From positions 1 through 15,786 of the forward strand of contig NW_021825374.1 in NCBI RefSeq assembly GCF_006345805.1: DNA of 15,786 bases, given 5' to 3'. The DNA comes from Octopus sinensis. Its lineage: Eukaryota. The notes under the pieces were generated by a model, which was not told the origin of the DNA, made no database searches, and was given only the letters and a program-made list of their open reading frames with translations. Within the stretch, counting starts at the first letter, position 1. Every line of letters starts with the position of its first letter. Shown in pieces: positions 2,001 through 14,060 of this stretch. Position numbers and translations under genes: made by a program.

Positions 2001-2048
2001 GACTCCGATGAAGGGATATATAAAATATCCCGGAAACAGCTGTAAGAC
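2001..2048 (+). ncRNA. Minimal type I hammerhead ribozyme motif, variant core (CCGAUGA)
   Basis: GACT-CCGATGA(2005-2011)-A-GGGATAT/ATAAA/ATATCCC (7-bp stem II)-G-GAAA(2033-2036)-palindrome ACAGCTGT(2036-2043)-GTA triplet(2042-2044)-AGAC. Stem I has 3 of 4 pairs. U4 is replaced by C. Confidence 0.62.
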
Positions 2049-2115
2049 CTTCTATCTATAAATGTTCTAATATCTACACGGCCTTGGTTTTTTATCTCAT
2101 TACGCAAAAAATTCT

Positions 2116-2204
2116 TATCTATCTATCTATCTATCTATCTATCTATCTATCTATCTATCTATCTATCTATCTATCTATCTATCTATCTATCTATCTATCT
2201 ATCT
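2116..2204. repeat. (TATC)n microsatellite
   Basis: Read directly. Confidence 0.98.
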
Positions 2205-2309
2205 TTGTTCCTTTCTTTCTAATTTTTATCACATATTCTACCAGCCGTAGAAGCTTTGTCATAAAATATACTTCTTCCACCACTCTGATCCCTATAAGTC
2301 AGTTCTCGT

Positions 2310-2363
2310 CCTCTCTCTCTCTCTCTCTCTCTCTCTCTCTCTCTATCTATCTCTCTCTCTCTC
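2310..2363. repeat. (CT)n microsatellite
   Basis: Read directly. Confidence 0.97.
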
Positions 2364-2624
2364 CTGTTTATTTTTCTAATAGTTTGCCTGTACATTTTCT
2401 TTCATTCTATTCCTCCATATATTCGTACATATCATTCCATTTTATGTGAAATCAAAGCATAAGATCTCGGAGTGGAAATATACCTCTCTTTCATTCAAAA
2501 TATTTCTATAGACGTTAACTATATATTCTTTTTACTCGAACCAACACTATATTAATGCGAATTCAGCGGAACGAAACAGGTCACAGACTGTCACAAATCA
2601 TAACTTTGGAGATATAAATTTTAG

Positions 2625-2883
2625 TACATACATACATACATACATACATACAACACACATATATATTATATATATATATATATATATATATATATATATA
2701 TAATATATACATGCTATACATATATATATTATTATATATATATATATATATATATATATTATATATATATATTAATATATATATATATATATTATATATA
2801 TATATATCATATGTATTTATGTATGTATATGTCTGTGTATATATGTGTATATATATGTGTGTGTGTGCGTATGTGTTTGTGTG
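2625..2883. repeat. Compound (TACA)n/(TA)n/(TG)n microsatellite
   Basis: Read directly; interrupted TA run ~2659-2807. Confidence 0.95.
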
Positions 2884-3496
2884 TTAGACGCACGTGACAG
2901 TGCCCAGTATGACCACATATTCGATGAAAGAAAACATTAGAAAAAAAAACAAAGAAAAGTCAGACATCCAACATACAACATATATACATACGACAGAGGT
3001 ACGCAACACAAACACGCCTGTATACGAGAGAAACTGCACACAAACACACGCGTAAGCAAGAGAAAGCTCTGTACAAAGACACACATACGTACAAGAAACA
3101 CAGCATGCTGGGAAAATTCTGACTGCGTGTCAAATGTCAATGTTTCTTGTTGATCACGTAAGCCTGACACTCATATGTAGTAATGATTGATGTCTCCATT
3201 GTTTTTTCATGATTTCTTTCTTTCCTTCTCTCTTTCTTTCACTCGCTCGCTCGCTCGCTCCTCACTCTGCTTCTCACACACGCACATACCTACAAGCGCA
3301 CGCATGCGCACGCACACACATATTCACACACAAGAGTGTATAAATACAACGTATACACTCTTGTTCATACAAATGGACAGAAGACGGTTATATACGCATG
3401 TACGAATGCACACACAACATTTCTGTATGTATACAGAAAAATATAAATAGTTTATATTATTCATACTGGCAAACAAACAGGGTGAATGAATTTATA

Positions 3497-3794
3497 TACA
3501 TACATGCATGCATACATACATACATACATACATACATACATACATGCATGCATACATACATACTTACATACATACATACATACATAAATACACACACACA
3601 CACATACATACATACATACATACATACATACATACATACATACATACATACATACATACATACATACATACATACATACATACATACATACATACATACA
3701 TACATACATACATACATACATACATACATACATACATACATACATACATACATACATACATACATACATACAAATATTTATACACATACATACA
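3497..3794. repeat. (TACA)n microsatellite, ~300 bp
   Basis: Read directly. Confidence 0.98.
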
Positions 3795-10261: not shown

Positions 10262-11270
10262 AGTGTGTGTTGAGTGTGTATGTGTGTATGAGAGAGAGAG
10301 AGAGAGAGAGAGAAAGAGAGAGGGTGTATGTTGTTTTTGTTGTTGTTGTTGTTGTGTGTGTGTGTGTCTGTGTGTGTTAGAGAGAGAAGGAGGGACAGCG
10401 TAGAGTTTTTTTTTTTTTTTTTCCTCGTATCTTTTTTAGTGAGTGAGAGAGAGAGAGAGAGAGAGAGAGAGTGATAGCGTAAATTTTATCTATTTAATTT
10501 TTCTCGCGTCTTTTTTAGTATGTGTTTGACTAGAGAAAGAGAGAGAGAAAGAGGGAGAGAGAGAGAAAGAGGGAGAGAGAGAGAGAAAGAGGGAGAGAGA
10601 GAAAGAGGGAGAAAGAGAGGTGTGTTGTCAGAGGGAGAGAGAGAGAGAGAGAGAGAGAGAGAAGGTGTGTCTTGCACTGCGTGTGCGTGAGAAGGAGAGA
10701 GAGGGAGAGAGAGAGAGAGAGAGAGAAAGGGAGAGAGCGATAGCGTAATTTTATTTATTTATTTAGTTTTTCTCACACTTTTTAGTGAGCGTGTGAGTGA
10801 TTGACGGAAAAGAAAAGAGAGAGAGAGAGAGAGAGAGAGGGAGGTGTTGTTATATATGTGTAAAATGGCTAGGGTCAGTTACACACGCACACAAACATAT
10901 ACATACACTCATTATCTGTTGTATATAGGTACATGCATAAATTCATACGCATACGTGCTTTTTCATGCGTGCGTGTGAGGGAGAGAGAAAAAGTCAGTCA
11001 CCGAGTGAAGGTGTGTGTTCTCATAACAACTGTTTTTGCATGTATGTATAGCGCTAGCTCTCTCTCTCTCACACACACACACACAGCAACACACACCTCT
11101 CTCTTTATTTCTCTCTCTCTCTCTCAGTCAATCACTCACAAATTCACTGGAAAAGGATGCGAGAAAAAATAAAAAGAATGTATGCTGTCACTCTGTCTCT
11201 CTCTCCCCCCCCTCTCTCTCTCACACACACACACATACGCACACAACACACACTTTCTGTCTCGCATCCC
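10262..11270. repeat. Microsatellite-embedded ~55-70-bp module in three direct copies and one inverted copy
   Basis: GA(C/T)AGCGTA..T-rich..TTCTC(G/A)C..TTTTTAGT(G/A) at 10394-10445, 10473-10530 and 10739-10805; inverted copy at 11127-11191. Left half GA/GT-rich, right half CT/CA-rich. Confidence 0.78.
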
Positions 11271-12260
11271 TTCATCAACACATCCACACATCCATCTCCA
11301 TTACTTTTCTCATTCATTTTATGCTGACTTCAAACAAAATATAATAAATAAAAATTCTTTACGAAATTTACCGGACGCCGTAAGGTAACAGCTCAGCTGC
11401 GCACACGCCTTCGTGTAAAACAAAAGATTGCTAAAATGACGAGGTTATTGCTACAATTTCTAAATAATATATTTTTTTCTGTTTTATGATATAATTACAT
11501 TAATACAGATGACGTAATTAAACTAATTGCAGATTAGCGGTGTCGTTGATAATTTTACATTACCTCAATGATGCCAGCGACATATATTAAAAGTCCCTTA
11601 TAGAACTATATTCATAAAAAAGTATAGAACTATATTATCACCCTCAAATTTGAGAAACAATCATTCATAACTTTTTTCTTTTAAAACTTCATTGCATGAG
11701 ATTGATACCATGAACTTCCTCGAATTGAGATCCCTATCATTTAAGCTTAGGTAAAGCCATATTATTCTGTGCAGTAGAAACACGTGTAGGTCGTCGTAGC
11801 CATAAAAATACGCTGTATGACATTGAAAATAAAAGAAAAAGGAAATAGATTTTGAAGAAGTGCCAGTCTTCGTATTCTCTATCGTTATAATTATTGCAAA
11901 TATACACTACATATGCTATTACCATTCAGTGAAGCGAACTCGGAATTACTCATCGGAAAAGTTTACAGCGTGAGTGACAACTCCTAATAGTCATAAACGT
12001 TAAATACTAATCGATGCAGTTAGCCGTAACCTGGAACATAACTGAGAGCTACCACGGTATCCGCCCAGACAATATATCCCTCTAAACTCACATTAATATA
12101 TATATATACACACACACACACAAACACATATATGTATATATATATATATATATATATATATATATATATATACAATGAAAAACTTAAGCCAATACATAGA
12201 TTATTAATTTATATTATTTAAATATATAACAAAATTATTAAAAAAATATAATTAATATAA

Positions 12261-12324
12261 CACTACGATCGTTTCATGGCTGTTAATTTCTTTAAATTTT
12301 CGAGTTACAGTCATTCATCAGGTG
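12261..12324 (-). ncRNA. Minimal type I hammerhead ribozyme motif (mirror copy)
   Basis: Exact reverse complement of 12359-12422; core TCATCAG on + at 12315-12321; predicted cleavage after 12264 on the minus strand. Confidence 0.82.
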
Positions 12325-12358
12325 GTTTAAATATTTAACTTGGCGAGGTTTAATTAAC

Positions 12359-12422
12359 CACCTGATGAATGACTGTAACTCGAAAATTTAAAGAAATTAA
12401 CAGCCATGAAACGATCGTAGTG
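12359..12422 (+). ncRNA. Minimal type I hammerhead ribozyme motif, intact core
   Basis: CAC-CTGATGA(12362-12368)-ATG(A)CTGT..ACAG(C)CAT stem II-GAAA(12408-12411)-perfect palindrome ACGATCGT(12411-12418)-GTA(12417-12419)-GTG. Stem I is CAC/GTG. Confidence 0.85.
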
Positions 12423-13477
12423 TTATATTAATTATATTTTTTTAATAATTTTGTTATATATTTAAATAATATAAATTAAATAATCTTATGTATTGGCTTA
12501 AGTTTTTCATTGTATGATTTGCCTAATAGTGGTTTTATCTCTAATTTAATATAATATAATATTTTACCATAAAATTGGATTCAATCCTAAATCTGATTTT
12601 TCCCTGTAAGTTTGGATTTATTCCCTAATATTTATTATATATATATATATATATACTTGTATATATTTCGTAATCATATACCCTTCAAGCTTATCTCGCT
12701 TTCTACTATCTTATAGAATTGGGACAGATGCAACTCTGAGTTTCACGTTTCCGATCCGAGTATCGATTTGTAAAATCTGATATTAAAATTTGATATATTA
12801 CTCTACTATATATATATGTAATTATGTATGTATAATATATATGATCATATATACGTATAGATATATACACACATACGCACACACACACACACAAACACAC
12901 ACACACACATACATACACTTGAGTGTATGTGCACACACAAACACACATATATAAGCACAAACATCTTTTTAAACTCACGTAGAACGAATAAGATCTTCCA
13001 CTTGCACGCAATATTATCGCCTTTCCGTCATACACACACGTACACACAATGACACACAGTCACACCCCCCCCCACACACACACTTACACACACACACACG
13101 TACACGTTATTTCAGTAACACCCTTACAGATTTATATAATAAACCTTGTCAGCAAAGGTGAAGATAATTAATTGCGCAAAGTCTCAACCCTACCCTAGGG
13201 GCCAATCTACAGAGATAGTAATTATCAATAGAATCTCATTAGTTCTCACTTCTATGCTATTCTCAAGTCTGAATACTCCCTCTGTTGCCACGAATCTAAC
13301 AGATTGATTCTGGTTTTTCACACCTCTCTCTTACCATTGTTCGTTTATGACGTCTCAATTGTGGTTAGGTTTTCTTCGTTGAATTTTGAATATTTTTAAA
13401 TCTTATTTTTGAGGATATGCAGTTCATTCTGAAAAATATTCTCTCCTCTCTCTATATCTCTCACAGTTTGTATGCTC

Positions 13478-13523
13478 TATATATATATATATATATATAT
13501 ATATATATATATATATATATATA
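13478..13523. repeat. (TA)n microsatellite
   Basis: Read directly. Confidence 0.97.
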
Positions 13524-13932
13524 TGCATGATTGGTTGCACTCGACGCACGACAGTTAAACCATTCAATTAAACATTGTTCTTTTCTCATATTATGACTGC
13601 CTGTCTGTCTGTGTATATATATATATATATATATACATATATAACAAACAATAATTCAAATAAACATATGAAAACCTTGAACTTAAATGTACGATACACA
13701 CATATACACATACTCACACATACACACACTCATCTATCTATCTATCTATCTATCTATCTATCTATCTATCTACACACACACGCACACACACACAAACACA
13801 CACACACATATACATCTTAAAATTTCAGATGATTAACAATCAAGTATAAATATAAACGTAAATAAATAAATGTATATATATATATATTTTAATAGAGCAA
13901 ACCTATTCAGGTTACACAGACTTAAAGAATTA

Positions 13933-14060
13933 GTCCGACAGCTGTTTCTGAGGGCTCGGAGTTACTTCATAATGTTGGCAGATGTAGATCATAAAAAATT
14001 TGCAACCAGTGATGGAAGCAAATAGACATTGGTAAAATACAGAACCTCCTTCATCAGGGT
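13933..14060 (-). ncRNA. Minimal type I hammerhead ribozyme motif with ~100-nt stem II insertion
   Basis: Minus strand: ACC-CTGATGA(14057-14051)-A-GGAGGTTC..GAGCCCTC-A-GAAA(13948-13945)-palindrome ACAGCTGT-GTC triplet(13939-13937)-GGAC. Stem I has only 2 firm pairs (CC/GG). Confidence 0.7.

Follow-up and report, generated by a model that had tools for sequence, protein, structure and literature searches.

Minimal hammerhead-type ribozyme motifs at four loci in a microsatellite-rich stretch of Octopus sinensis DNA

A stretch of 15,786 nucleotides (nt) of Octopus sinensis DNA (NCBI RefSeq assembly GCF_006345805.1, contig NW_021825374.1, positions 1 to 15,786 of the forward strand), which is referred to below as the window in its whole length, carries five sequence motifs with the architecture of minimal type I hammerhead ribozymes. 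The motifs had been proposed in a sequence-only reading, and all of the coordinates and box-to-box distances given there were reproduced by direct reading and by a regular-expression (regex) search. That reading counted five motifs at four loci; the positions were correct, albeit the pair at 12.3 kb represents the two arms of one foldback and is counted here as a single event, leaving four independent loci (L1 to L4). The distance between the 5' and 3' boxes is 21 nt in L1, 57 nt in L2, 39 nt in each of the two arms of L3 and 102 nt in L4. The parts of the loci are as follows.

L1 cassette, ~1926..2115, + strand: unique island of ~190 bp between (ATCT)n-type and (TATC)n repeats (Tandem Repeats Finder [TRF] arrays 1608-1889 and 2116-2204)
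L1 motif, 2003..2046, + strand: stem I of 2 bp, CT/AG; core CCGATGA 2005-2011, with U4 changed to C
L1 stem II, + strand: GGGATAT 2013-2019 / ATATCCC 2025-2031, 7 bp; extra nucleotides A2012 and G2032
L1 3' box, + strand: GAAA 2033-2036; palindrome ACAGCTGT 2036-2043; GUA ends at 2044 (H17 = A2044); predicted cut 2044/2045
L2 cassette, 4428..4721, - strand: island of ~290 bp with (AG)n/(AT)n on one side and a short (TA)n on the other
L2 motif, 4541..4628, - strand: stem I of 6 bp, ATGCAG 4628-4623 / CTGCAT 4546-4541; core CTGAGGA 4622-4616
L2 stem II insert, 4615-4559, - strand: 57 nt; long imperfect hairpin with two U.U mismatches adjoining the core
L2 3' box, - strand: GAAA 4558-4555; near-palindrome ACGATAGT 4555-4548 with one mismatch; GUA ends at 4547 (H17)
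L3 foldback, 12170..12515: 346 nt, AT-rich; arms of 157 and 159 nt differing by two 1-nt indels; loop ~12328-12355
L3 right-arm motif, 12359..12422, + strand: stem I CAC/GTG (3 bp); core CTGATGA 12362-12368
L3 right-arm stem II, + strand: ATGACTGT 12369-12376 / ACAGCCAT 12400-12407; 7/8 pairs
L3 right-arm 3' box, + strand: GAAA 12408-12411; palindrome ACGATCGT 12411-12418; GUA ends at 12419 (H17)
L3 left-arm mirror motif, 12261..12324, - strand: core 12321-12315; palindrome 12272-12265; H17 at 12264
L4 cassette, 13888..14062, - strand: island of 175 bp with (TA)n on either side and no terminal inverted repeats
L4 motif, 13935..14059, - strand: stem I of 2 bp, CC/GG; core CTGATGA 14057-14051
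L4 stem II insert, 14050-13949, - strand: 102 nt; ends pair as GGAGGUUC/GAGCCCUC (7/8) beyond an A.A adjoining the core
L4 3' box, - strand: GAAA 13948-13945; palindrome ACAGCTGT 13945-13938; GUC ends at 13937 (H17 = C13937)
Sixth match to the search grammar, 7231..7353, + strand: CTGAAGA ... GAAAATGCAGTA, in a long interspersed element (LINE) remnant; no stem I or II; z = 0.0

Except for the two arms of L3, the cassettes are mutually non-homologous and could not be aligned, which bears out the earlier statement that their flanks are unrelated. What they have in common is short: L1 and L4 both possess the stem III CAGCUG, the string GAUGAAGG and GAC after the cut, and L2 and L3 share CGAU(C/A)G and GUA. 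Conservation restricted to the functional boxes in this manner is expected of a ribozyme carried by diverged elements. In L3, an (AT)n repeat adjoins the left end of the foldback, and each arm begins a few nt upstream of stem I. The minimum free energy (MFE) of the foldback was -225.6 kcal/mol (z = -43), with 124-nt arms that are 100% complementary.

We searched the window with a regex grammar consisting of C[T/C]GANGA, 10-115 nt, GAA followed by an 8-nt A...T palindrome (one mismatch at most), and H. Six matches were found, including that at 7231-7353. Dinucleotide shuffling of the window, either globally or in 1-kb blocks, yielded 0.21-0.23 matches per window, and none of 1000 shuffles reached six; the comparison with shuffled sequence, proposed together with the motifs as a check, thus failed to reproduce their density. 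When only perfect palindromes were considered, four matches were observed against 0.01-0.03 expected from dinucleotide shuffles. The real sequence was also searched with decoy grammars, and the true grammar ranked first of 540 composition-matched grammars, giving five strict matches against three for the next best, while 490 decoys had no match at all. No grammar match was found in the reversed window sequence. As a control of real DNA, we used 111 kb of non-redundant eukaryotic DNA that is rich in transposable elements, has a GC content of 34-39% and was obtained via LINE matches. This control contained three loose matches and one strict match, equivalent to 0.14-0.43 per 15.8 kb, and the match rate of the window is 15-30 times higher.

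The two boxes were also surveyed separately. Both strands of the window together hold seven CTGANGA boxes and 13 GAAA-palindrome sites, and five of the seven boxes are followed by a palindrome site. For seven GAAA-palindrome sites that are not paired with a box, no near-core that could be used was seen upstream; only one near-core with a single mismatch exists, and the 7 nt between it and G12 leave no room for a stem II. Two of the perfect GAAA-palindrome-H sites, 11777-11788 and 15163-15174 on the + strand (GAAACACGTGTA and GAAATCGCGATC), lack any 5' box upstream and are chance-like. Searching the window for other palindrome lengths and for a U3-A8 core variant gave nothing convincing, the site at 11650/11777 being without stems. 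The match at 7231-7353 was rejected as a hammerhead and judged to be a chance occurrence, as it has neither stem I nor stem II and lies inside a LINE coding remnant. The remaining motifs are real and non-random, and their architecture is genuinely of the hammerhead type.

The helices expected from the positions of the boxes were assessed after trimming the four motifs at fixed offsets from the boxes and aligning them ungapped. In the register set by the boxes, 71.4% of the cells in stems I and II were standard pairs (n = 4 sequences). Sliding the partner strand by 1-3 columns reduced this value to 28.8-42.9%, and shuffled partners gave 47.5 +/- 5.4%, with none of 500 shuffles as high as the observed value. 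Changes on both sides of a pair between cassettes were found in nine of 14 pairs. This test is largely independent of the search, because the regex selection used the boxes only. Contiguous pairing in stem I extends over 6 bp in L2, 3 bp in L3 and 2 bp in each of L1 and L4. In L1 and L2, the stem II insert forms a hairpin that closes at its ends, with z values against shuffles of -4.1 and -3.7, respectively; stem II also closes at the ends in L3 and L4 (7/8 pairs each), albeit with fold energies that are not significant. The MFE structure of the L3 monomer includes both stem I and stem II. When homodimers are predicted (dimer MFE) for L1 and L3, stem II is retained and the palindrome is paired between the strands at eight of eight positions, which is the arrangement of a dimeric hammerhead; in L4, seven of eight positions are paired.

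The core sequences allow a tentative judgement on activity. The 5' box (C3 U4 G5 A6 N7 G8 A9) is exact in L2, both arms of L3 and L4, and departs from the consensus in L1 with C4. The 3' box (G12 A13 A14, A15.1-U16.1 and an H17 other than G) is present in all five motifs, with GUA in L1 to L3 and GUC in L4. Without gaps, the first pair of stem II would be A.G in L1, U.U in L2, A-U in L3 and A.A in L4. An A or U follows A9 at all four loci, and an extra nucleotide also lies between stem II and G12 at all four. The core of L1 is CCGAUGA, and L1 has an additional G between stem II and G12. The palindromes are perfect in L1, L3 and L4; that of L2 has one mismatch, and the stem II of L2 has two U.U mismatches at its base as well. 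Judging from general hammerhead biochemistry, L1 and L2 are probably inactive. The cores of L3 and L4 are intact, and these motifs might still cut as dimers.

We built a covariance model (R1) from the four trimmed motifs. In the window, R1 recovers L1 and L3 by construction, splits L2 and L4 owing to their long inserts, and detects no additional motif. In the control DNA, it found a motif at 6124-6174 (+) of L001, an ENA eukaryotic contig, with 17.9 bits and a rough E value of 0.012. This motif reads CUGAUGA-U-UGACGUU...AACGUCA-U-GAAAC...GUC, with a 7-bp stem II flanked by U on both sides and a stem III hairpin of 3 bp. It resides in an island of ~300 bp (6041-6344) between two (TA)n arrays, and was not recognised by Rfam. 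At this score it is no more than a hint that an unrelated genome carries a motif of the same architecture in the same kind of genomic setting. No homologue was retrieved for an open reading frame (ORF) spanning L4, and a 22-mer of L3 was not found in metagenome and viral contigs. Four ORFs of the window had no database record, and protein searches with the LINE and mariner remnants yielded matches of only 38-58% identity. The family pattern CTGATGAAGG N6-36 GAAACAGCTGT gave 120 matches in metagenomes, of which 82 shared an identical 28-nt span with N7 spacing. None of the 120 matches was convincing as a hammerhead; the identical sequence CTGATGAAGG-N7-GAAACAGCTGT recurs in many contigs of the human gut metagenome and looks like an unrelated segment of conserved bacterial coding sequence. 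We also considered the UGAUGA stretches as parts of C/D-box small nucleolar RNAs, and rejected this by eye since no D box or terminal stem is suitably placed.

The surroundings of the four loci are eukaryotic in appearance, with a GC content of ~33% and microsatellite arrays throughout (42 TRF rows across the window). No tRNA was found in the window, nor any long ORF except translated repeats. A degenerate mariner/Mos1-type transposase remnant lies at ~550-1373 (+), matching the Pfam domains HTH_48 and Transposase_1 in a reading interrupted by stops and frameshifts. Two successive fragments at 7084-7404 and 7712-8453 (+) correspond to the C-terminus of a LINE reverse transcriptase (RT), being 38-58% identical to zf-RVT proteins from long eukaryotic contigs of ENA, and 7101-7153 within this LINE region is occupied by a perfect tandem repeat of 20 bp. 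Two long tetranucleotide arrays, (ATGT)n at 1607-1889 and (ATAC)n at 3496-3778, are inverted relative to each other and lie 1.6 kb apart, with 283-nt arms that are 83% complementary. A purine-rich block of (GA)n/(GAGAGG)n extends over 10262-10860, and the GC skew is +0.53 over 10001-11000. A short dispersed repeat containing GGCGGAATTTGAACTCAG is present in three copies on the + strand (3878-4041, 15342-15505 and 15647-15712; 64-83% identity). It resembles a short interspersed element (SINE); we found no tRNA or Rfam match for it, and a literature search did not return the string.

Hammerheads of a similar design have been described in Penelope-like elements (PLEs). In the PLE-type minimal hammerheads (Cervera & de la Pena 2014, PMC4209133), stem II has 6-8 bp, stem I has 4-5 bp (2 bp in Drosophila virilis), a nucleotide intervenes between A9 and position 10.1, and stem III is palindromic. 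Their sequences are extremely varied within a genome, solo or truncated copies prevail, and two copies are occasionally found on opposite strands at a distance of 100-700 bp (PMC4209133). The order of parts in our loci, namely stem I, CUGANGA, a long stem II, GAAA, a self-complementary stem III, UH and the second strand of stem I, is that of the PLE type I minimal hammerheads (PMC4209133; Lunse, Weinberg & Breaker 2017, as cited in PMC6765202). Stem II of 7-8 bp (7 bp in L1; 7/8 pairs in L3 and L4), a short stem I and a nucleotide after A9 are also shared with them, although the hairpin of L2 is longer and irregular. The palindrome of stem III, perfect at three loci and with a single mismatch in L2, is a further likeness, and so are the solo or truncated state of the copies, the pair on opposite strands, the wide divergence in sequence and the failure of standard descriptors to detect them. 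In contrast to the published cases, the loci in the window are accompanied by no identified PLE ORF or terminal repeat, and they differ in the inserts of 57 and 102 nt, the extra nucleotide between stem II and G12, and the C4 of L1.

Comparisons with other systems agree in part. Among PLEs, Naiad elements contain boxes termed 'HHR_core / HHR_half_core' (Craig et al. 2021, PMC8557442), which, like ours, fit no standard stem/loop descriptor; their second box can be 35-50 nt away, and Naiad elements show a (TA)n preference and inverted or truncated insertions (PMC8557442). The hammerhead helices were not demonstrated in the Naiad matches, whereas stems I and II pair in register in the loci studied here. 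The core boxes and type I topology are those of Rfam Hammerhead_1 (RF00163), yet no Rfam hammerhead model matches the loci at any threshold tried. The Sm-alpha repeats of Schistosoma, which are SINE-like, resemble our cassettes in being short, non-coding, dispersed and equipped with a type I hammerhead, but the Sm-alpha hammerhead is canonical and stands behind a promoter (PMC6765202), unlike the minimal architecture seen here.

We consider it probable that each of the four loci is a short fragment of a retroelement, present as a dead solo copy and carrying a minimal type I hammerhead of the PLE kind. The motifs, their enrichment and their pairing pattern were observed; from the likeness in architecture we infer a PLE parentage, and cleavage as dimers and inactivity are likewise presumed. 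In the parent element, by a mechanism that is established for the family and presumed for these copies, the motif would reside in a terminal repeat near the 3' end. The CUGANGA and GAAA boxes would be flanked by a stem I of 2-6 bp and a long stem II, and stem III would be a mere 8-nt self-complementary stretch, which makes a single motif unstable. Two motifs, located either in a tandem or multimeric transcript or in two RNAs, could pair via the palindrome to make a full stem III, and each motif may then cut after GUH, so that the RNA of the element would be trimmed ahead of reverse transcription. The sequence-only reading stated that such motifs cleave efficiently as dimers. This was overstated, as low activity in vitro is reported even for dimers (PMC4209133; review PMC6765202).

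The insertion habits of PLEs may account for the shape of the cassettes. PLE insertions are usually 5'-truncated and often have an adjacent inverted truncated copy, with the hammerhead near the 3' end and a bias towards microsatellites such as (TA)n (PMC8557442). An insertion machinery preferring microsatellites would leave 5'-truncated copies and inverted pairs, and hence islands of 175-346 bp beside (TA)n/(TATC)n and a head-to-head foldback such as that at 12170-12515. The L3 inverted pair beside (AT)n and L4 within (TA)n conform to this expectation, but the whole window is dense in microsatellites and L3 also fits a miniature inverted-repeat transposable element (MITE). The derivation from PLEs suggested earlier gains from the architecture, the inverted pair and the microsatellite setting, all of which fit published elements (PMC4209133, PMC8557442), but finds no counterpart in an RT or GIY-YIG ORF in the window.

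Several observations weigh against the preferred reading. First, no remnant of the RT or GIY-YIG domain of a PLE was detected by Pfam in any of the non-repetitive ORF pieces, where mariner domains were the only finding; the only RT-related remnant in the window is the LINE C-terminus. As the window contains no RT or GIY-YIG ORF, PLE derivation is a matter of inference. The lack of these parts weakens PLE membership without excluding it, since most published copies are also solo. Second, no further copy of any cassette was retrieved. Third, Rfam hammerhead models gave no match, whether the whole window or slices of 81-91 nt were scanned, with the gathering score or with E <= 10. The Rfam scan had been recommended earlier as a means of checking the motifs, and it returned not a single hammerhead, only noise of microsatellite or microRNA-like nature and the L3 foldback. 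Fourth, the helices have shortcomings: (i) the pairing test is based on just four sequences, (ii) stem I is of only 2 bp in L1 and L4, (iii) the fold energy of stem II in L4 is no better than that of shuffles (z = -0.8), (iv) G10.1-C11.1 is available in L1 and L4 only, and requires one extra nucleotide on each side of stem II, and (v) the extra 3' nucleotide is not among the features described in the PLE hammerhead papers cited here. Lastly, L3 can alternatively be read as a foldback or a MITE with a TA duplication.

Among the alternatives, the cassettes could be solo monomers of non-LTR retrozymes, which are small non-coding elements spread via circular RNA, rather than fragments of PLEs; we regard this as unlikely. 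Animal non-LTR retrozymes (Cervera & de la Pena 2020, PMC7229834; preprint 10.64898/2026.07.22.740005) resemble our loci in their type I hammerheads and in the nature of the unit, which is non-coding and AT-rich, spans just a few hundred bp and is thought to be derived from PLEs. The islands of 175-300 bp are within the monomer range of ~170-400 nt, their GC content is low (PMC7229834), and in L3 and L4 stem I follows the start of the unit after just 5-7 nt, which could be expected of a permuted full unit. In addition, the 2026 preprint (10.64898/2026.07.22.740005) argues for an origin of retrozymes in the terminal repeats of PLEs and includes 'solo' monomers in its counts. On the other hand, tandem arrays define the class, and no head-to-tail repeat of any cassette occurs in the window, where the copies are solo or inverted; the description 'retrozyme-like' given earlier fails on this defining feature. 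Moreover, the hammerheads of the class have been described as canonical, having loop-loop contacts and 4 bp in stem II, whereas those found here are minimal, with stem II of at least 7-8 bp and an insert of up to 102 nt, and the inverted pair in L3 is a PLE-type structure. In any case, a reading as solo retrozyme monomers stands close to that of PLE-type relics, which we favour, and the two are not truly opposed.

A further alternative, which we hold to be doubtful, is that the cassettes are complete units of undescribed non-autonomous retroelements of ~160-300 bp, which target microsatellites, share only a variant minimal hammerhead and occur at ~1 per 3 kb, a density far above that of any reported genome. 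The variant would be characterised by 1x1 non-G-C positions on both sides of stem II, inserts of up to ~100 nt and the two palindromes CAGCUG and CGAUCG. The similar motif in the (TA)n island at L001:6124-6174 hints that such elements may be widespread.

For L3, it is conceivable, albeit improbable in our view, that the foldback is a MITE-type DNA transposon with a TA target duplication, in which the hammerhead-like motif is incidental or passively carried. L3 is a 346-nt, AT-rich, near-perfect palindrome, and can be read as CAATG...CATTG with TA on both sides and adjoining (AT)n. Nevertheless, a terminal TA is uninformative in a TA-rich target, and adjacent inverted 5'-truncated copies are a documented outcome of PLE insertion (PMC8557442). 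L3 is also the best hammerhead match of all, with a perfect core and palindrome, 7/8 pairs in stem II and a 3-bp stem I; no shuffle yielded an L3-like match, and its stem III and GUA are in common with L2.

It is very unlikely that all of the matches arose by chance, through a loose grammar applied to AT-rich and repeat-rich DNA. The grammar is indeed short and relaxed, admitting C[U/C], near-palindromes and a stem II of 21-102 nt, one match (7231-7353) does appear chance-like, Rfam finds no hammerhead, and weak elements are present in L4 and in L2 when these are taken singly. Against this, shuffles, decoys, the reversed sequence and real-DNA controls all gave far lower numbers, the helix registers set by the boxes pair far above the slid and shuffled controls, and identical stem III sequences recur across unrelated cassettes. 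Chance is therefore largely excluded for the set, but possible for any single weak locus, L4 foremost. Host-domesticated ribozymes acting in cis on a host transcript, as the conserved intronic hammerheads of amniotes might suggest (work cited in PMC4209133), can scarcely be the explanation for four unrelated cassettes on both strands, embedded in microsatellites and with two damaged cores, in a window where no host exon was detected.

The motifs sighted in this stretch of DNA are thus real, but the class to which they belong is already known. Minimal hammerheads of the PLE type are known from many animal genomes, where they number in the thousands, and their presence here is unsurprising; what is unusual is confined to the length of the stem II inserts and the local density of the motifs. 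Since Rfam misses every copy, such motifs remain unannotated. The four unrelated cassettes in 12 kb of microsatellite-rich DNA fit the idea of elements homing to simple repeats. If the density held genome-wide, natural variants of the hammerhead could be obtained from this genome in great number, including those with long stem II inserts and non-canonical closing positions of stem II, which would be useful for studies on dimer-dependent cleavage.

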